The notes below the pieces were generated by a model. The model did not search any database and was not told the origin of the DNA. It worked only from the letters and a program-made list of their open reading frames with translations. Positions 19,363 to 32,118 of a stretch of DNA of 64,000 nt are shown here, piece by piece; the first letter of the stretch is position 1, and every line of letters begins with the position of its first letter. The position numbers and the translations under genes were made by a program. Origin of the DNA: Adineta vaga (taxonomy: Eukaryota > Animalia > Rotifera); contig CP075496.1 in NCBI GenBank assembly GCA_021613535.1, forward strand, positions 8,246,001-8,310,000. Direction: 5' to 3'.

Positions 19363-21139
19363 ATGAGATTAACTATTCGTCATCTTTGTACAAAAATACG
19401 ACTTCGAAGACGTTTTTCTTTTATATTTTTAATAACTATACTTCTTCTTATGGTCTTTATTTTATTTATTATTGATTATAATCATCAACCGTTCGTTTCA
19501 TTACAAAATTCTGAACAAGAATTAACATTAACAACAACACAAAATGTTATTGTTAAAATTCTAACTAAAAATAGTCAAAAGTAAGATCGATAATGAGCAC
19601 CTAATGAGATATTGACATTGTCTTTGTCTATAGAACAGGATTATGGCCATTGGATGAGCAAGGCCGTTCGTTGAAAACAAATTTTCTCGTTCTTGACTCC
19701 ACCGGATTTTTCGGTTCTGGTGCAAGTGAAGGTGTTCAAGTGAATTGTCGTTCATCGAATACAACATTCATATGGACACGTCAACAGAATCGAATTGAAG
19801 AAATCGATTTTGTTATATCACATGATGCACGAGATGTAGATACTTTTCCGTTCAATAAAATTCATTTAAATAATGAACAGCAACAATATTCAATGGCATT
19901 TATTATGGAAAGTGAAGCACATTCATCCACGGGAAATGCTTGGAGTAATTATAATTTTAAAATGTCATACAATCTCGATGATAGTTATCCGGAACCAGCA
20001 ACATATTTTGATACGAATATCCATATTATGGATTTACTTAGACCATCGATAGTGAAATTTGAGGAAAAAGAAAAACAAGCGGATATTGTTTGGATTATTT
20101 CGAATTGTAATGTAAGTGACAAACGAAAAGAACAAGTTTCAATCATGATTACGAAATTTCTTTGTTATTTATTCTTATATAATCCACAATTCTCTTCACC
20201 TTTTCGTTATTGTTATTAGTATTAATGGATTAAGTTGAAAGTACACGTTCATTTAAATGAACAAAGATAAGATCTTAGAAGAATGGTCATCATCGGTAGA
20301 AGGATAGTAAAAATTCGATTTTTTAATAATAGATGAATTGCAAATGAGAGAGAGATAATGAAAGAAAGATCGTCGATTGTAAAAACAAAATTCATACGAC
20401 TAATATAACATATTTATCCGATCAAATGATTCTTAATTGTATCATATTTTAGGCACACAATGGTCGTGAAGGTTTTATCGAAGAATTAATGAAAGAAATT
20501 AAAATTGATTCATATGGTTCATGTTTGAATAATCGTCAAGGTTATGAAGATCGTATGGCTGAGAATGTTGATGCCTATACGAAATATAAGTTTGTTATTG
20601 CTATTGAAAATTCAAATTGTATAGATTATGTAACAGAAAAATTAGTTAAAGTTATCGAATCTGGTTCAATACCTATTGTTGCTGGTCGAACTAATCGACC
20701 TGATTATCGACGATTTATGCCTGATCATTCTTACATCAACATATTTGATTATCCAACAATAAAATCGCTTACTAATGATCTAAAACGTATTGGAAGTAAT
20801 CAGACTTTATATGAATCTTATTTATGGTTTAAAAAACATAAGATCAATATGAGATTATTTGCTAAACTTTCTTTAAATGAAAAATTGAAACAATTCGCTA
20901 ATGTGATCGGTTCAAATGCTACCATGATTCAAGATGGAATCGTACGAAAAGAAAAAGGTGAAAATAAAATTTGTAAACTTATACGATTTGTACGTCAAAT
21001 ACCTTGGCAAGAAATCGCAGCACATAATAGAACAGCTAGACCTGATGAAAACACGGCTTGTTTGCCTCAAAGAAGTATAATGACTCATTTTCAATTATCA
21101 CTATCTTCGAATAATAATCAAACGAAGAAGTTATCTTAA
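19363..21139 (+). CDS. Alpha-1,3-fucosyltransferase (GT10), type II membrane protein, 3 exons
   Basis: N-terminal TM anchor, MESE, WIISNC, IDSYGSC and the GT10 motif YKFVIAIENSNCIDYVTEKL. Confidence 0.9.
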
Positions 21140-21323: not shown

Positions 21324-22405
21324 TCATGAATTAGGAAGAATTCTAACACTATCACCAGGATTACATAAGACCATAAGTAATTGCCAAGGAAATGGGGTTA
21401 ATTTTGGATCGACTCCAAGAACACATGTACTTTTCATCCGTTCATGATATAAACGCACTTCCATTTGATTACAATCAAGTGTAAGTTGTAATACATCGTT
21501 AGGTTGAATTTTATTGCTATTAAAATCGGTCTTCTTGCAACTACGACTGCAGCGTCCTTGTTCATAAGCTTGATTAGAACCAAACCATCCTACGGCACTA
21601 GGCAGACGAAAAGCATCTTCTTGTAAACTTATTTTCGATGCCATGCAACCAAAAAATATATAATAAGGTTGTTTACATTTTTCTAATCGAAATCGAATTG
21701 TATGAGAACCTCTTAAATAAAGTAATCGACCACGAACATATGCATAATCAGAAACTGGACTGGTATGGCGAGCAACAAAACCACCTTCTTCAAATCTGAC
21801 AGGTCCTAAACTTTGTAAGAAACGTTCTTGTAAAGTTGAATTCGGCTGATTTGATGATGTATCTTTTCGATTTGGTGAATTATTGTTCAGAGATTCATCA
21901 ATATGTAATTGCATGAGATAAATTGGATTGTTTTTATCTGGAACCAATTTTGCTGCTGGTGGAAATGTTACTTGTAATTCTAAATCTTTCAATTGTTTTT
22001 TCCATCGATCAAGATCATGTTCAGAGAAATCTCCGCTTCACGAGCAGAATGAAGATCATCAGTAATATCATCATACATTTTTGATAATGGTCCTTTTGCT
22101 TGATCAAGTAAATCTAATAAACTTCGTCGTGCACTTTCAGCAGCTATTTGAATCTTTAAAATCGAATCTTTTTCCCAACGATCAATTTTTTGTAAAAGAG
22201 AATTTTTTCTTGCCGATGGTTGTTCAATTTCTTGTTGAAGTAAATCGTGTTCTTGCATGATATTGTCTAATTTTGCAGCAAGTTCTTGTCGATGTTCAAT
22301 GACATGTTTACCACAAAATGTCTTCTGGCAACCATCACAAGTTAAAATTCCACCACTCTTATTACATGTAACACATTGTTTCTTGCCACCTGAGTTCGTA
22401 GTCAT
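21324..22405 (-). CDS. B-box/coiled-coil/SPRY-like protein, array copy 1 (one frameshift near 22032)
   Basis: CxxC-x7-CxxC-x4-CxxH-x3-H zinc motif, coiled coil and a C-terminal SPRY-like domain (IFFGC, VGWFG, DVLQLTLDC, PFPWQLL, GDSVRIL). Restoring 1 nt joins the two ORFs into a paralog-like protein. Confidence 0.75.
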
Positions 22406-22739
22406 TCTTATCGTTGAAATATTTTAATAAATGTGAATATGATACTTTCAAATGACCTTCTTTCCTTATTTTTTGAGCGAAACATTGAGAGAAGGAAATA
22501 GAAAAATATACCATTCACCGTAACAAATATGTTTCTACTACATGTAGTTAAGTAAAAATAATCAATATGAAATTGTTAGTATCGTATCACATGTTTTTTT
22601 CTTTGCATTCAAGGTAAAATATATGTGGAACTGATAGTACTGTTTTTTTTTCATATATGAAAACATAAGTTTAAGAATTCATATTCAAAGAAAAAAGTAT
22701 GTTTTTCTACACTATCTATAGACATACACATTATTTATT

Positions 22740-23020
22740 CAAAACAAAGCGTAACAAGTACCTAACATTCGAACACCCTCAAAATTTCTATGAAAAATAA
22801 TCATTAACAATCGACAAAGAAAAGATCGTTTGTTCATATTTACCTTCAATACAGTTTTTTTGTTAAATTATAATCGAAAGAGATCTGTAATACGACAACT
22901 TGTTAAATAAAGATGCCGACCTTGAACATATGCATAGTTTGATTTAGAACTAATATGTTTGGTTTGATAAACATCTTGTTCGATACTAATAGCATCTGAT
23001 AGTTGATCGAATCTTTCGTC
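22740..23020 (-). pseudogene. Relic of the SPRY-like domain (array copy 2), internally deleted
   Basis: ERFDQLSDAISIE..KHISSKSNYAYVQGRHLY and LKVNMNKRSFLCRLLMII..VRMLG align to the paralog domain. The middle of the domain and the B-box are missing. Confidence 0.7.
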
Positions 23021-23302
23021 CATTCTATTAGTTATGACTATGTTTACTAGAAAAAGACTGTTGACATCTAACACAAATCATAATACCTCGTTTGGTTTTA
23101 GTTGTTATAATTATAATCGTTTTTCTTTTTCAAATATGTAATTAAACGTAGCGGTCATATTATTTTTATTCAGAAATGATACGAAGAAAACGAAACATTT
23201 CATTATGTCTTACAAGAATAATTTCAGTTCAAAGTTGAGTGTTTACTAATTCATTCATAAGGTCAATGTATATTACGATTCATATCGTATTTGTTAAAAT
23301 AT

Positions 23303-24413
23303 TCATGCATCATTAAGCACTCTTACACAATCACCGCTACGAGATAAAACTACTAAAAGCTGCCAAGGGTAAGGTGTTTTATCAATGTTGACGTTGATAA
23401 TGTTTGTTTGGTTCGAACGTTCATTGAATAATAGTATTTGTTTTCGACCACAATTAAATATAAGACGTAATACATCGTTTGCTTTTATTTTACCACTATT
23501 ATGTCCATGCACTTTCGAATTACAACTACATGATCCATGTTCATATACCTGATTATATCCGAACCATCCAACAGAACTGGAGGAACGAAAAACGTCTTCT
23601 TGTAAAGCTACTTTGGATGACATACATCCAAAGAATATATGGTATGGTTCTTGAAACTTTTCGAGTTTGATTCGTATCATATGGCTACCATCTGAATACG
23701 TAGTCGACCACGAATATATGCGAAACTGGAAGTTAGACCAGCATGTATCACCCGGCTGCCGTTGTCGGCAATGAGAGCACTCCCTGAGGATTCATAAAAT
23801 GCTTCTCGTAGCAGAGTCCAAGAAGTAGGTTAATGACGCTGTACATGGCGATGGTGATGGTGACGAGCTATTTTTACTTGTCGATTGATTACTAGCCGCA
23901 TCTTTAATTTGTAACTTGATCAGATAAAGTGGTTCGCTTTCATCCGCCATCAATTTAGCAAATGATGGCGATTCAAGTTGTGCTGCAAGTTCTTTCAATT
24001 CTTTTCTCCATTTATCAAGATCATGTTCTCTGAAAAATCATCAGCTTCACGAGATGCGCGAAGCTTTCTGCAATGTCAGGAAATTTTTTTGCTAGTCGTT
24101 CTTTCGACTGTTCAAGTAATTCTTTTAAAGTTGTCCGAGCTGTTTCAGCAGCCATTTGAATTTTAGCAATTGAATATTTTTCCCAATGATCGATTCTCTC
24201 GAGCAGAGCATCTTTTTTTGATGAAGGTTGTAGCAGATCCTGTTGAAGTAAATCATGCTCTTGCATAATATTATCCAACTGTCCCGCAAGTTCTTGTCGA
24301 TGTTCGATAACATGTTTGCCACAAAAAGATTGTTGACATCCATCACAAATTAGAATACCACCACTTTTATTACATGTTACACATTGTTTTTTATTCATTG
24401 CACTAGCACTCAT
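23303..24413 (-). pseudogene. B-box/coiled-coil/SPRY-like gene, array copy 3 (about 4 frameshifts; pseudogene or assembly error)
   Basis: Full architecture is recoverable across frames, with indels near 24062, 24028, 23820 and 23700. Its N-terminus is nearly identical to copy 1 (KKQCVTCNKSGGIL). Confidence 0.65.
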
Positions 24414-24490
24414 TTTCGATTGTGTAAGATGAAAAGCTGGAAATCAGTGTTGTTTTTGTGCTTTAGAAATGAAAAGAAAGAAAGAAAGTA

Positions 24491-24640
24491 CACGTGGAGC
24501 ATATATAATGACGTCATTAATAGATTGAAGTTAACCATCATTAGTACTAAAAATGCGCACATATATTCACATACAATTTCAATTCGAGCAAAGTATACTC
24601 CGTGAGGAAAGCATCGATGTTTTTTGTAGCAATTACGTCA
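24491..24640. promoter_or_regulatory. Cluster of E-box, CRE and CRE/CEBP-like sites upstream of array copy 3
   Basis: CACGTG at 24491-24496, TGACGTCA at 24509-24516 and TTACGTCA at 24633-24640. Confidence 0.35.
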
Positions 24641-24780
24641 ATGATTTATCTGTAAGAAGAATCAATTGCGACTGTTTTTTTTCTTTCAACTCTCTATTAG
24701 CCAATAAAATGCCAAAATATTTTAATTTATTCAGTGAAATCAAAAGTATCAACAACTTTCATCAAAAAAAAGAAAAGAAT

Positions 24781-25872
24781 CTATAAATTTCCAAGCATTC
24801 TAACACAATCATTTTTATGAGACAAAATAACTAATAATCGCCATGAATAAGGAGTTTTGTTGATATCCACTTTCAATATATTGATTGTATTCAAACGTGG
24901 ATTAGATAAATGAATTTCATTTTTAATACAATCAAATTGAACATGTATCATATCGTTTTGTTCAATTGAATTACTTCTATAATGATATTTTTTACAATTA
25001 GTGCTACAACGTCCTTGTTCATATACTTGATTAAATCCAAACCAGCCGACGACATCAGGTAAATTAAGTAAATGTTCGCTCAACGCTGTTTGAGATGATT
25101 TACATCCAAAGAAAATATGATATGGTCGATTACATTTTTCAATTTGAAATCGAATTATATGACGACCTGTCGAATAAAGTAATTGACTTTGTATATATCC
25201 GTATTCAGAACTAGCAGATGTATGTTTGGCAATACAACCACCATTTTCCAAAGTGATAGGACCAAATACATTTAAGAATTTATCCTGGATCCGTGAATTT
25301 AACGATATTGTTGATGCAGAAGGTTGTTTATTGTCGACTGACTGATTTTTATTCGATTTCATTTTTTCATGTATAATTGAATGAGTGATGGATTTTTGGT
25401 CTTCTGTAATCTTAATTGAATATGGCAATAAACTTTGTGATTTTAATTGTGTTAATTGTTCTCTCCAATGAACAAGTTCATTTTCAGCATAATCATCAGC
25501 TTCACGAGATGTACAAATAGAGATAGCTATATCACGACATGTTTGTGCAAGTTTTTCTTTCGTTTGTTCAGTTAACTTTTTTAGATTCGTTCGAGAAGCT
25601 TCAGCTGCACATCGAATCTTTGCAATATATTCTTTTTCCCATTGATCGATTTTCTCAAAGGATGATTGATCTACTGATAATTCTGAAATTTTATGTTGAA
25701 TTAAATCATGTTCTTGTATGACAGTGTCCAATTGACCAGCTAATTCTTGTCGATGTTGAATCACATGTTTACCACAAAAGATACATTGACATCCATGACA
25801 TATTAAAATACCTGTACTTTTGTTACATGTTATACATAATGATTTGTTTGTTGCACTTGCATTTGCACTCAT
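24781..25872 (-). CDS. B-box/coiled-coil/SPRY-like protein, array copy 4 (intact, intronless)
   Basis: Continuous ORF. The likely start MSANAS at 25872 is chosen by paralog alignment. Confidence 0.85.
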   Translation of the reverse strand: MSANASATNKSLCITCNKSTGILICHGCQCIFCGKHVIQHRQELAGQLDTVIQEHDLIQHKISELSVDQSSFEKIDQWEKEYIAKIRCAAEASRTNLKKLTEQTKEKLAQTCRDIAISICTSREADDYAENELVHWREQLTQLKSQSLLPYSIKITEDQKSITHSIIHEKMKSNKNQSVDNKQPSASTISLNSRIQDKFLNVFGPITLENGGCIAKHTSASSEYGYIQSQLLYSTGRHIIRFQIEKCNRPYHIFFGCKSSQTALSEHLLNLPDVVGWFGFNQVYEQGRCSTNCKKYHYRSNSIEQNDMIHVQFDCIKNEIHLSNPRLNTINILKVDINKTPYSWRLLVILSHKNDCVRMLGNL

Positions 25873-26240
25873 ATTTGTTTGTTCGTTTTGAAATAAAAAG
25901 AATTCTTTTCTTTTAACTAATCCTCTGACTTTAATTGGAAATAGATATGGACGAATGAGACAGCAAAACGACACAAATGATTTTCTTAAATGAATCATCG
26001 AAATAAGGTTTCATCGATCGCATCGCACGCATCGTCTCCAGTGAATTGTTGAATAAGTAGAGAGAAATTTCATATGACAAATTCTGATATTTATTTAACG
26101 AACAGAGTACTAAAATACAACTATGATTGCCAATGGATTTTTCTTTTTCATTTCCATCGTCTATATCGAGCAGTTATTCCTACAAATTATTTTAGTACTC
26201 TGAATGATACATATTCGAACAAATCATCCAATAGGTAAAA

Positions 26241-27323
26241 TCATTTTCTAGGCAGAATTTTAATAGAATCATCTGGATGAGCTAATACCACTAAAAATTG
26301 CCAAGGCAACGGTGCTTTCTCAACATTAACTGCAAGTTTATATGTTTTGTTAATTCGTTCATGGTACAATGCAATTTGTCTTTTATTACAATCCAATGTT
26401 AAACATAAAATATCATTTGATTGAATTTCAGTACTATCATAACCATGTATGTTGACATGATTATTCCAGGTACCATGCTGATAGACTTCATTATGACCGA
26501 ACCATCCGATAGCAAAAGGTGAATTATAGTTGATTACTTTTGGCATTCGTTCCGATGATATACAGCCAAGAAAAATCATGTAAGGAGATGTACTATGAAG
26601 AATTTTAAATCGAATCCGATGACAACCTTGAGAATAGAGTTGTGTACCAATGACATGTCCATAGTCTAGTTCTGTACCAATATTTTTAGCAACCAAACCA
26701 TCATTTTCCACGGATACTGGATACGTTGCTTTAAGAAAACGTTCTTCTAAATCGGAATGTGATACTTTTCTTTTTCTATTAATGGTATTTGGAAGTTGTT
26801 TTTGAACAATTCGAATATTATGAATTGAAGATTGTTGATCTTGCATTAATTGAAGCGAATTGGATGATTGAATTTCTACTCGAAGATCATTCAATTGTTG
26901 TATCCATCGTTTTAAATCATTTTCTAGAAAATCATCAGCTTTATAAGATGCCTTTAAATCCAAAGCAATTGCACGAGATATTCTTGTAAATCGTCTCTTC
27001 GTTCTATCAAGAGTCTGTCTAACTTCATCTCGAACATTGTCTGCAATCGTTCTGATTTTCTGAATTGATTCTTGTTCCCATTTATTTATTTGACGTAAAT
27101 AAAAATATTCATTGGATGTTTTTTCAATATCTTGTCGAAGTAATTCATGATCATTCATAATATCTTCTAATTGATATGCAAGTTCTTGTCGATGTTTCAG
27201 AAGATGTCTCTCACAAAATTTTAATTGACAACCCTCACAATTCGATATCGTATGATTCTTACGACAAATAACACAATGTCTTGTTTCAACAACATTGTTA
27301 AGAAGAATTTTCGTTACCGGCAT
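26241..27323 (-). CDS. B-box/coiled-coil/SPRY-like protein, array copy 5 (intact, intronless)
   Basis: CVICRK..CEGCQLKFCERHLLKH, ADDFLENDL, IFLGC, IGWFG, LTLDC, PLPWQFL. Confidence 0.85.
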   Translation of the reverse strand: MPVTKILLNNVVETRHCVICRKNHTISNCEGCQLKFCERHLLKHRQELAYQLEDIMNDHELLRQDIEKTSNEYFYLRQINKWEQESIQKIRTIADNVRDEVRQTLDRTKRRFTRISRAIALDLKASYKADDFLENDLKRWIQQLNDLRVEIQSSNSLQLMQDQQSSIHNIRIVQKQLPNTINRKRKVSHSDLEERFLKATYPVSVENDGLVAKNIGTELDYGHVIGTQLYSQGCHRIRFKILHSTSPYMIFLGCISSERMPKVINYNSPFAIGWFGHNEVYQHGTWNNHVNIHGYDSTEIQSNDILCLTLDCNKRQIALYHERINKTYKLAVNVEKAPLPWQFLVVLAHPDDSIKILPRK

Positions 27324-27559
27324 GATGTTGAAATGAAGAAACAATTGGTTTTGTTTATGTCGCTATATTATAAAATAGTAAAAGAATTTGAAAAGCTTCT
27401 TTTCGATTAATTCCGCCGATCTATTGTTTTTTTGTTATACTTTATCAAATTGATTCTTGTAAAGTTTCAGAAGTTGAATATAGAAAAGATTATTTTAACA
27501 ATCATATTCAAAAAGAAACAAAATTGTTTTTAGATTTTATTACAAAATATTCTCAGATC

Positions 27560-28645
27560 TCATTCAACTATGAAACGAGTTTGATCTTTGTTATTCAAAT
27601 GTAATTTAGATGCAGAAAGAATTCGTACACAATCATCTTTATCAGTTAACATCATTAATAATTGCCATGGTAATGGTGCTTTTTCAATATTAACACTAAT
27701 CACATGTCTCTTATTGGTATCTTCATGAAATAATTCTAATTGTTTCTTTTCACAATCAAATGTTAAATATAAAACATCATTTGCTGCTATTTCATTACTA
27801 TTATAACCATGTACACTCGGATTACCATTACGAATACCATGTTGATAGACTTGATTGAAACCAAACCATCCAGCAGTAGATATTGAATTGATCGATATTC
27901 GTTTTTGAATAACTTCCGATGAAATACAACCAAAGAAAAGATTATATGGTATGCCACATTGTTCGATTTTGAATAGTATCGTATGTCGACCTTCAGAATA
28001 ACGTTGTTCACCAAGAACATATTCATAATTCCAATCATTACTCGTATGTTTAGCAAGAAGACCATCATTGTCCAAAGTAACACTACCAATAACTTTCGAA
28101 AATCGATCTTGTGTAATTGATACTGGTATATTTTTCATTGTATTTAGATCTTTAATAGAAATTAGTTTAATAACAGACCATTCATTATCGATTAGTTTTG
28201 CTTGAACAGGTGAAATCATTTCTGACTTTAATTGTTTCAATTGATTTATCCAACGATTTAATTCATTTTCGGAATAATCATCAGCTTCACGAGATGAACG
28301 AAGATTCATTGCAAGATCACGATATGTCTTAGTTAATGGTTCTTTTGATTTCTCAATCATTTGTTGTAATTGTTTTCGAGCATTTTCTGCAGATATTTGA
28401 ACTTTTGTTATTGTTTCTTTTTCCCATTCATCAATTTTTAGAAATAAAACATGATCTTTAAATGCTCGTTCGAAATCTCGTTGTAATACATTATGTTCTT
28501 GCATGATACTATCTAATTGTTGACTTAATTTTTGTCGATGTTCAAGCGTATGTTTTCCACAGAATGTTTGTTGACATCCACTGCAAGTCATGACACCAGT
28601 ACTATTCGAACAAGTGATACATTGAAGTTTTTTATCATTGGTCAT
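27560..28645 (-). CDS. B-box/coiled-coil/SPRY-like protein, array copy 6 (intact, intronless)
   Basis: Likely start MTNDKKLQC at 28645, with the same motif series as the other copies. Confidence 0.85.
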   Translation of the reverse strand: MTNDKKLQCITCSNSTGVMTCSGCQQTFCGKHTLEHRQKLSQQLDSIMQEHNVLQRDFERAFKDHVLFLKIDEWEKETITKVQISAENARKQLQQMIEKSKEPLTKTYRDLAMNLRSSREADDYSENELNRWINQLKQLKSEMISPVQAKLIDNEWSVIKLISIKDLNTMKNIPVSITQDRFSKVIGSVTLDNDGLLAKHTSNDWNYEYVLGEQRYSEGRHTILFKIEQCGIPYNLFFGCISSEVIQKRISINSISTAGWFGFNQVYQHGIRNGNPSVHGYNSNEIAANDVLYLTFDCEKKQLELFHEDTNKRHVISVNIEKAPLPWQLLMMLTDKDDCVRILSASKLHLNNKDQTRFIVE

Positions 28646-29283
28646 ATTAATATTGAAATCGTGTAATCGTATAGTGAAGGTTAAAAAGAAAATAAAGTTT
28701 AAATCCAATGTACACATAGAAACAAAAGAAGAGAAAGAAAGAAAGAAAGAAAAACGGTACAAAAATGTTCACAGGTTTTGTCTTTCGATTATGAGTCGAA
28801 GGTGAAAGAAACAGATAGAAAGCCATGTGCTTTTTTTTTAGATTTATGAGATGTTATGTGTCAATAGAGAAGAAATCGAGTAAAAATGCTTTAACTTATG
28901 CATACGTGTGTGAATGAATTTAAAAGTTACTTTTTAGAATAGAAATTGAGAAAGTATATAGTAACTAAAAGATTTATGACGGCAATAATGATTTAAATAT
29001 AAAGATATCAATTTAACTTGATGTATGCTCAACAAAATTGAATTTGTTCTTTTGAGGATATGATACTAGAACGGTTCTAAACGACTTGTTTGTTTTTTTT
29101 TGACACAAAATCAACAGGAAATGTTTATCTTCTCCTGACTACAATCATGATTATAATGTTAGACATATAATTGATGTTATATATTACTTTTATAATCAAT
29201 TAATCGAATTAAGAAGTATGTATATACAAATTTCCCAAGAGTATTGAAGTAGATAGAAGCAGTAAAATGTTTTTATATTGGAT

Positions 29284-29964
29284 TTAACGACGACCATTCA
29301 ATGGTTGAGTCAGCATTTGAATGAGATTCTCATAGTTAACACGACCATCTGAACTAATATTCAATTCACGTAAGATTAAATCGACTATAAATATAGAAAA
29401 AGAAATGATTTGAACGAGCATAGGATCACATAATCATACCATCTTTATCAGTTAATTTTTCTCCTGTATTGGTAAGAAGATATCTCAATTGTTGAGCATC
29501 AATATATCCATGTCGTTGTGTATCATAGAGTTGAAATGCAGCCATGATTTCATTCGGTGTATTTTCTGTTGATCGATGTTCCAAAACAATTTTAAGAAAA
29601 TCATCAAATTCTACGATACCAGCATCTATTTTTGCGACATAAAATTACGTTAGAAAATAACTGACAAAGAGAGCTACATACCTTTTTTATATTTAGTAAA
29701 ATATCGTTTGAGCTCGGCAATTGTTGGTGCCATACTTAATGATCGCATTATAAAACATAATTTATCTGGTGTATCAACATAACCTTGTGGAGCAAATAAT
29801 TGAAAACATTGACGAAAATCTAATTAGAAAATTATTCGATATGTTAAATTGAAATTCATCTCTCTCTCTCTCTTACTGTCAATTTCTTCTTCACTAAAAT
29901 TTTTTGACTAGAAATATCAAATAAAAATGATGCTTCATTATAGTTCTGGTTGATTACTTACCAT
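29284..29964 (-). CDS. Calmodulin-like EF-hand protein (CALML4-like), 5 short exons; absent from the ORF track
   Basis: Spliced translation: M-SKNFSEEEIDNFRQCFQLF..IMRSLSMAPTIAEL..GIVEFDDFL..EIMAAFQLYDTQRHGYID..LTNTGEKLT..DGRVNYENL. Confidence 0.85.
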
Positions 29965-30882: not shown

Positions 30883-32118
30883 ATGAATAATATTTGGATT
30901 TTGTTCTCTTGTCTTTTATATTCCATCGATGGTAGAATTACGAGACCTCGAATATGTCGAAATTGTACGGGAAAAATCCATAAAAAACAAGATTTAGAAT
31001 TAACGAAATTACCATTAATTATCGACAAAACTCAGATATGTATAAAGGCAAATTATGAATATTTCATTATAATTAAATCTGGAAGTTTTTCACGACGAAA
31101 TTTTACTCGATCAACATGGGCAAAAGAAATGAAAGAACATTTTCATATTCCTATTCTATACGCGATCGGTACTCCGAAGAATTCGTCAATTCAAAAAGAT
31201 CTTTTTGCTGAAGATGAACAATTTCATGATTTATTACAATTTAATTTTCTGGAAAACTATTATAATTTAACGATTAAAACGACTAGTGTTTTAGTTTGGT
31301 ATGATCGACATTGTTCAAAAACTAGTAAATATTTATTCTATGTTGACGATGATCTTCTTATTCATACGGAAAAATTTATTATTTACATGATGCAAATGAA
31401 TTATTCGGATGCAATGGAAGGTTGGTTTGAAAAAGCCGGAAAAATTCTCCGAACAGGTGTTGGTGGTGTTACAAAAGAAGATTTTCCAATTGATATTACA
31501 CCAGATTATTTGTGGGGTGCAGCAGTCTTATATCCATCGAATATTGTATCGAATCTCTTGATAAAATTTATATTTAATACGACATTACCCATATTTTTTC
31601 GTGATGATGTATTTATCAATGCTTTCATAGCAGAAGAAGCTGGAATAAAACGACAACAAATGAAAGGACTCGTATTGTATGATCCAACTGAAGATAGTTT
31701 GAAAGATAATATGATTGTAATTGATTTTACAAATGAAGAACATCGCTATCGAGCATGGAATTGTTATAAATATAATAAGCAATGTAATCGAAATCTGTTA
31801 TTAACGTTATTTAAATTCTTTTCAGTATTAAGTTTATTTGGAATAATAATTTTATCTTGTTGTAAAATGATCAAAGCAATGAAATGTTATAAACCATTAA
31901 TTTATCAATTGGATGCGATTTATTATGAAATGAAAACGATATGCGAACAAAATTTGAGCGTATTTACGATTATTATGAGAAAATTTTGTCCAACGATTAA
32001 ATGTCGAAGAGTAAAATTTACTATTTATTTAATATTACATTCAAAACGAAATTATATTCGACTAGGCTTTTTTGTTATTATTCTAATTGTTTTTTATCAT
32101 TTTCTTCTAAATAAGTAG
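30883..32118 (+). CDS. Beta-1,3-galactosyltransferase-like (GT31), single exon
   Basis: RRNFTRSTW, EDEQFHDLLQ..ENYYNLTIKT, YVDDD, PDYLWGAA, DDVFI. Confidence 0.88.
   Translation: MNNIWILFSCLLYSIDGRITRPRICRNCTGKIHKKQDLELTKLPLIIDKTQICIKANYEYFIIIKSGSFSRRNFTRSTWAKEMKEHFHIPILYAIGTPKNSSIQKDLFAEDEQFHDLLQFNFLENYYNLTIKTTSVLVWYDRHCSKTSKYLFYVDDDLLIHTEKFIIYMMQMNYSDAMEGWFEKAGKILRTGVGGVTKEDFPIDITPDYLWGAAVLYPSNIVSNLLIKFIFNTTLPIFFRDDVFINAFIAEEAGIKRQQMKGLVLYDPTEDSLKDNMIVIDFTNEEHRYRAWNCYKYNKQCNRNLLLTLFKFFSVLSLFGIIILSCCKMIKAMKCYKPLIYQLDAIYYEMKTICEQNLSVFTIIMRKFCPTIKCRRVKFTIYLILHSKRNYIRLGFFVIILIVFYHFLLNK

Follow-up and report, generated by a model that had tools for sequence, protein, structure and literature searches.

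Five full-length paralogues and one truncated relic lie in tandem on the minus strand of positions 21324-28645 in a 64,000-nucleotide stretch of the genome of the bdelloid rotifer Adineta vaga (contig CP075496.1, positions 8,246,001 to 8,310,000; hereafter the window, whose own coordinates are used throughout). We conclude that this array is probably an old, syntenically conserved tandem set of five intron-free, RING-less TRIM-like genes, with a relic beside them, whose products would be adaptors of fixed specificity and not arms-race receptors. An earlier note, made from the window's sequence, had described six paralogues and proposed that they form a lineage-specific, diversifying repertoire for innate recognition. 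Conserved order in related genomes and purifying selection on the genes both run counter to that proposal.

Results

The array is conserved gene for gene in related bdelloids

The full-length genes are named E, D, C, B and A in their order along the array (Table 1). In the reference sequence, E, D and C are intact single open reading frames (ORFs) of 360-363 amino acids (aa), A lacks a single base, and B carries four frameshifts. The same-strand copies are thus where the earlier note placed them, but its sixth member is the relic, so that a count of six holds only if the relic is included, and the reference keeps just three of the ORFs intact. Identity among the paralogues is low (41-54%), and the spacers that separate them measure only 237-369 bp.

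Adineta ricciae (contig L046) has five array genes in the same order and beside the same flanking genes. In Adineta steineri (contig L042) three array genes lie between the galactosyltransferase and EF-hand genes on one side and the fucosyltransferase and Oscp1 genes on the other, and two further bdelloid contigs (L044 and L045) hold four and five array genes, respectively. EF-hand and fucosyltransferase neighbours are common to these four loci and the window; galactosyltransferase and Oscp1 also occur at the relatives' loci where the contig reaches them or the gene model was recognised. In the window, the three nearest flanks are the galactosyltransferase, EF-hand and fucosyltransferase genes.

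A maximum-likelihood tree of all array members resolved five orthogroups, in which the window genes pair rank for rank with those of A. ricciae (100/99 support). Gene D has orthologues in A. steineri (g2, 62% identity) and A. ricciae (g2, 66%), gene C in A. ricciae (g3, 62%), and gene B in A. ricciae (g4). Three of the five orthogroups (E, D and A) are found in A. steineri, whose array holds no member of the B or C groups. A broader tree places gene C with sequences from Rotaria, which indicates that the paralogues arose before the compared genera separated. With five positional orthologues in A. ricciae and the same flanks in five genomes, the array shows no lineage-specific duplication of the kind seen in diversifying TRIM arrays.

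Upstream of the A. steineri array, at L042:7767-8003 and outside the called genes, there is also a lone fragment that corresponds to the last ~80 residues of a SPRY domain and is 64% identical to gene D.

Selection on the array is purifying

Ratios of non-synonymous to synonymous substitution rates (dN/dS) were calculated by the method of Nei and Gojobori (NG86) for pairs of orthologues, with gene B represented by the open version described below. All values for array genes fall between 0.03 and 0.38 (Table 2). Gene D is the fastest-evolving array member against A. steineri.

Table 2. Pairwise dN/dS of array genes and of a neighbouring control gene
Gene	vs A. steineri	vs A. ricciae
E	0.31	0.13
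D	0.38	0.30
C	no array orthologue	0.36
B (open version)	no array orthologue	0.18
A	0.32	0.03
Galactosyltransferase (control)	0.36	0.21

Constraint extends to the SPRY domain, for which the ratio lies at 0.07-0.48 across comparisons. SPRY is the most constrained part of gene E (0.13-0.24); in gene A (0.07-0.30) it has the lowest ratio of any domain against A. steineri, and against A. ricciae the coiled coil alone is lower (0.02). When pairwise counts from three orthologue pairs were pooled in windows of 15 codons, all SPRY windows gave 0.16-0.53, and the sole window near 1.1 fell in the disordered linker (residues 166-180). No positive selection was seen in the variable SPRY loops in these pooled pairwise windows. 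The alignment bears out the observation that linker and loop segments differ between paralogues. The two loops that had been quoted as examples are paralogue-specific, yet they are largely kept between orthologues, with a ratio of the proportions of non-synonymous and synonymous differences (pN/pS) of 0.16-0.47; five sequences of the E group, for example, have the same E-type loop. Purifying ratios, together with one-to-one collinear orthologues in A. ricciae, are what the earlier note had itself named as grounds for abandoning a diversifying repertoire.

Synonymous divergence (dS) of the window from A. steineri (0.48-0.64) is lower than that from A. ricciae (0.72-1.30), yet in protein trees the window genes are grouped with those of A. 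ricciae. Altered base composition may be distorting dS.

The C-terminal domain is predicted to be a divergent PRY/SPRY fold

The protein of gene E was modelled as a single chain with AlphaFold2 (AF2) from an alignment of 30 sequences, with a mean predicted local distance difference test score (pLDDT) of 80.6. The model contains a small finger, helices over residues 30-144, a disordered linker (155-174) and a beta domain (180-345). Foldseek matched it best to the PRYSPRY or SPRY domains of TRIM67, TRIM72, TRIM16L, TRIM9 and HERC1 (E ~1e-9; template modelling score by target 0.59-0.80). A structural search against representatives (VIA) gave Z 19.2 to the PRY-SPRY of TRIM16L over 161 aligned residues, with a root-mean-square deviation (rmsd) of 2.6, followed by TRIM25 (Z 18.7), TRIM14 (18.4) and the SPRY domain of HERC1 (17.9). 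Alignments to SPRY structures begin at about model residue 169 and take in the PRY portion of the targets, and structure neighbours in the Atlas carry SPRY and zf-B_box domains.

Sequence searches were silent on this domain. Pfam SPRY and PRY had no match at E up to 1 in seven ORFs, and PDB sequence searches with a single protein and two profiles matched no SPRY chain, returning only weak matches to AN1, UBP, PHD and TRIM B-box domains. On the strength of the models, the C-terminal domain is a divergent PRY/SPRY (B30.2) fold that sequence profiles miss, and structure prediction, which had been named as the check on the proposed SPRY-like domain, thus came out in its favour.

The coiled coil follows the zinc finger directly. 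When the N-terminal 150 residues were modelled alone, helices were predicted at 30-63, 66-120 and 126-144 (pLDDT 91; helices of the AF2 models above 90), and the predicted coiled coil of ~115 residues closes in a conserved READDxSExxL turn. TRIM72 aligned collinearly with the gene E model over 290 residues (VIA). Of the proposed TRIM layout, the order of zinc finger, coiled coil and SPRY domain therefore stands, whereas its B-box can be called B-box-like at most.

The zinc finger is B-box-like

Seven invariant predicted zinc ligands (C9, C12, C21, C24, C29, H32 and H36 in gene E) are spaced C-x2-C-x8-C-x2-C-x4-C-x2-H-x3-H; the two-zinc cross-brace that defines a B-box has eight. The columns ADDxxExxL, FFGC, GWFG and PW, which had been listed as Zn-binding and structural motifs, are indeed invariant or near-invariant in the 30-sequence alignment, but none of them is a zinc ligand. 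The ANCHR-like B-box model of Pfam scored 15-22 bits, under its cut-off of 27, and zf-AN1 and zf-UBP scored alike. A PDB profile search with the finger found an AN1 finger at E 0.0095 and, weakly, the B-boxes of TRIM25, TRIM28, TRIM3 and PML at E 0.1-0.2. With the N-terminal model, the best Foldseek rows were ZnF-UBP, PHD, RING and AN1 fingers, all at E above 0.3, led by the ZnF-UBP domains of USP49 and HDAC6 (rmsd 1.0-2.0 over 38-41 residues, E 0.4-0.8); no B-box was among the top 50, and helical matches stayed at background level. Related proteins carry the automatic UniProt name 'B box-type domain-containing protein'. Among proteins of named species, the nearest are from A. steineri, A. ricciae and Rotaria. 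Because profile and structure matches are weak and mixed, we call the finger B-box-like and nothing firmer; it is a putative cross-brace.

Gene bodies appear unspliced and lack a RING

Contigs from public sequencing runs were placed on window positions 22850-28849, and whether a run was RNA or DNA was guessed from its size and coverage. In three RNA-like runs, contigs lie over the bodies of genes B, C, D and E, the spacers are largely bare, and the number of joints is zero; in the DNA-like run every bin is covered. RNA-like contigs cover 27698-28663 at gene E, 26158-27333 at D and 24734-25903 at C, and stop 10-31 nt upstream of the ATGs of these three genes without joints or loose ends. The relic lies outside the RNA-like contigs, with a depth of 0 in runs X1, X2 and X5 at 22850-23049. 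Gene models of the array are also single-exon in A. steineri and A. ricciae. As far as the contigs can show, the array genes are unspliced, as had been read from the intron-free coding sequence. Terminal repeats, looked for with a Penelope-mediated or retroposed origin of intron-free copies in mind, were not found; the study consulted on such an origin deals with NRPS genes, which contain introns. The neighbouring galactosyltransferase is likewise a single ORF, so the intron-free state is not unique to the array within the window.

A Cys/His pattern resembling a RING is missing from all frames of the 64-kb window, and a RING is absent from all rotifer family ORFs examined. Wherever the zinc-finger motif was recognised in family ORFs across the genome, it begins at residue 5-21, leaving the N-terminal RING of the TRIM/RBCC definition without a counterpart in the array genes. 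A spliced RING exon further upstream, which would have overturned the RING-less assignment, was not seen: the RNA-like contigs end just short of the ATGs without joints, and the space upstream of gene E is filled by the multi-exon EF-hand gene (~29263-29913). Short spacers, the EF-hand neighbour, the lack of a RING pattern and the position of the finger together indicate that the genes are RING-less.

Genes A and B are broken in the reference

Contigs of runs X1, X2 and X8 carry a ~97% identical version of gene B with a full open frame of 370 aa. Relative to the reference, this version has an A inserted behind 24063, two bases deleted at 24026, TT inserted behind 23828 and an A inserted behind 23699. 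These four indels coincide with the four frameshift sites and, when applied together, restore one open frame; the open version of B used here was built from them. Two studies supplied the three runs, of which one is DNA-like (2013) and two are RNA-like (2024); in the DNA-like run, the depth of the open version is half that of the flanking sequence. Listed changes that separate the open version from the reference comprise 9 synonymous and 17 non-synonymous ones (ratio ~0.6). The reference B may be a broken allele in an asexual animal or a local assembly error. A general statement that B is a dead gene, with the frameshifts as its mark, was rejected because contigs carry the open version.

Gene A was read with an X at the break. 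Despite the missing reference base, its identity to A. ricciae g5 is 92%, and this value and the dN/dS of 0.03 imply that the break is recent, allele-specific or an error, the low ratio also indicating that the gene was strongly constrained in the past. Both breaks deserve a check, since each could stem from errors of assembly or, in an asexual animal, from the decay of one allele.

The array belongs to a large modular family

A search with a family profile gave at least 131 matches in the six-contig haploid genome of 100.8 Mb, many of which extend over no more than the zinc finger and coiled coil. Alignment shows that the N-terminal module is shared with ORFs that continue into other domains, namely NHL repeats, a Vint/Hint domain, a lamin-tail domain and possibly a MavL-like macro domain (Table 1), and many more family ORFs end in SPRY-like C-termini. 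This pattern suggests domain shuffling on a single zinc-finger and coiled-coil scaffold. No description of the family in rotifers was found in the literature searched, and a paper on rotifer infection is silent on it.

Among the neighbouring genes (Table 1), the fucosyltransferase is read as two ORFs and therefore contains an intron. The EF-hand gene is a useful slow-evolving control beside the array.

Table 1. Features of the array, its flanks and family members with other C-terminal domains (window coordinates unless a contig is given)
Feature	Position	Strand	Description
Fucosyltransferase (Glyco_transf_10)	19650-21139	+	Pfam E 6.5e-32; conserved array boundary
Gene A	21324-22405	-	Full length; one base absent at ~22032 (codon ~125, in the conserved READDFSE turn)
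Relic copy	~22760-23100	-	Zinc-finger remnant fused directly to SPRY pieces, coiled coil gone; tblastn pieces at E 6e-5 to 2e-3
Gene B	23303-24413	-	Reference frameshifts at ~24063, 24026, 23828 and 23699 (three-frame translation)
Gene C	24781-25872	-	363 aa, intact ORF
Gene D	26241-27323	-	360 aa, intact ORF
Gene E	27560-28645	-	361 aa, intact ORF; orthologues 76-80% identical
Gene E, putative PRY/SPRY	~27611-28141	-	aa 169-345
Gene E, predicted helices	~28214-28558	-	aa 30-144
Gene E, putative zinc finger	~28538-28621	-	aa 9-36
EF-hand gene	29263-29913	-	Several exons; tblastx 94-98% protein identity to A. ricciae in two main exons
Galactosyltransferase (Galactosyl_T)	30883-32118	+	Pfam E 3.3e-22; single ORF; conserved outer boundary and rate control
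NHL repeats on the same N-terminal module	L032:284-1726	-	Pfam NHL E 3e-22
NHL repeats on the same N-terminal module	L033:198-1634	+	Pfam NHL E 8e-33
Vint/Hint domain on the same module	L034:198-1448	+	E 7e-43
Lamin-tail domain on the same module	L036:365-1288	-	30.5 bits, below cut-off
Possible MavL-like macro domain on the same module	L029:186-2012	+	Weak
Possible MavL-like macro domain on the same module	L030:180-2129	+	Weak

Discussion

Judged by the models, the array proteins are a RING-less TRIM-like variant with a cryptic SPRY domain, encoded in a conserved array. They most resemble vertebrate TRIM proteins that also lack a RING (TRIM14, TRIM16, TRIM16L/TRIM70 and pyrin/TRIM20), with which they share a zinc finger, a long coiled coil, a PRY/SPRY domain and the missing RING; the CHS-B30.2 of TRIM20 and the PRYSPRY of TRIM14 also stand high in the structure match lists. 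Compared with these proteins, however, the array members are only 8-14% identical in sequence, their domain escapes Pfam SPRY and PRY, their single finger with seven ligands falls under the threshold of every B-box model, and their genes are intron-free and stand in a conserved row of five. TRIM5alpha and the finTRIM arrays of teleosts offer a second parallel as tandem multigene families of B-box, coiled-coil and B30.2 proteins in which SPRY loops vary between paralogues. Those families have a RING, arose by lineage-specific duplication and show positive selection in the B30.2 loops (PMC2657112), whereas the rotifer array has collinear orthologues, dN/dS well under 1, a constrained SPRY domain and no RING. 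The TRIM-NHL proteins (Brat, TRIM2/3/71) and the expanded B-box families of spiralians resemble the rotifer module where it is joined to NHL (L032 and L033); the window genes differ in ending in SPRY, and the coiled coil of Brat was matched weakly (Z 7.0), no better than the background for helices. AN1-type fingers are close to the array finger in ligand spacing and include its best PDB profile match, but AN1 and ZnF-UBP matches are below significance, and a context of coiled coil and SPRY is that of a B-box protein.

How such proteins might work can be sketched by analogy with TRIM structures. The coiled coil would form an antiparallel dimer, in which the conserved READDxSExxL turn may fold the last helix back, and the dimer would then present two SPRY domains for binding. 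Loops that are specific to each paralogue and kept between orthologues suggest that every paralogue could bind its own evolutionarily stable partner. The lack of a ubiquitin ligase (E3) domain points to a role as adaptor or scaffold, and any ubiquitin ligase would be recruited in trans.

In the reading of the earlier note, the genes are diversifying innate-immune receptors of a single lineage, whose SPRY loops track pathogens and which depend on a separate E3 partner. The TRIM-like layout, the large and often tandem family, the change in copy number from 3 to 5 between species, and the presence of a relic and a broken B all fit this reading, as do the concentration of paralogue differences in the linker and some SPRY loops and the rates of D and C, which evolve about as fast as the expanded glycosyltransferase. 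We nevertheless consider it improbable. One-to-one, collinear orthologues exist in A. ricciae and, in part, in three further genomes; every gene-level ratio is purifying and the SPRY windows, with the two named loops, are constrained throughout; and the split of the paralogues predates the species compared, gene C grouping with Rotaria. Expression or infection data on the family were not found in the literature searched. Purifying selection would, on the other hand, be expected of immune or stress sensors that each recognise an invariant microbial or damage-associated molecule, and loops that each paralogue has kept between orthologues would suit such sensors, as would the layout held in common with TRIM sensors and the occurrence of the scaffold, in the wider family, together with binding domains of other kinds, NHL and lamin-tail among them. 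The same evidence fits binding of the animal's own partners equally well, and neither induction data nor a signalling domain was found, which leaves this explanation doubtful. A role in defence, through sensing of conserved patterns or at the level of the whole family, may nonetheless apply.

That the cluster is of little function and its duplicates are drifting into pseudogenes is very improbable indeed. Only three of six reference copies are intact, and the two B versions differ at a ratio of ~0.6; but dN/dS is far below 1 in all five genes, including the two that are broken in the reference (A 0.03, B 0.18), an intact B occurs in both DNA-like and RNA-like runs, and the array has been kept in at least five genomes.

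Several points weigh against our own reading of an old, conserved set of adaptors. Divergence is uneven, D and C being only 62-66% identical to their orthologues as against 94-98% for the two main exons of the neighbouring EF-hand gene. Copy number changes from 3 to 5 between species, and this, the relic and the broken version of B indicate that some birth and death occurs. The ratios are approximate, since dS lies at 0.5-1.3 and NG86 handles an AT-rich genome crudely, and pairwise data of this kind would still be compatible with a few positively selected sites. The runs were only guessed to be RNA, and true transcript ends lie beyond the reach of the contigs. Dimerisation and the adaptor role are drawn by analogy.

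Conclusions

A tandem TRIM-like array alone is no proof of an arms race: this one is held gene for gene across Adineta and is under purifying selection. The analysis supplies a predicted fold and layout for a large group of rotifer proteins that are listed as 'B box-type domain-containing' or hypothetical and whose SPRY domain is invisible to sequence profiles. We suggest, tentatively and as an unlikely extension, that the array is part of a bdelloid-wide toolkit of RING-less scaffolds with swappable C-termini (SPRY, NHL, Vint/Hint, lamin-tail and macro-like), an intracellular set for recognition and adaptor functions whose origin would parallel that of the vertebrate TRIM family and which would do with no E3 of its own. 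For bdelloid biology, the finding points to a big family of RING-less modular scaffolds whose partners are to be sought.

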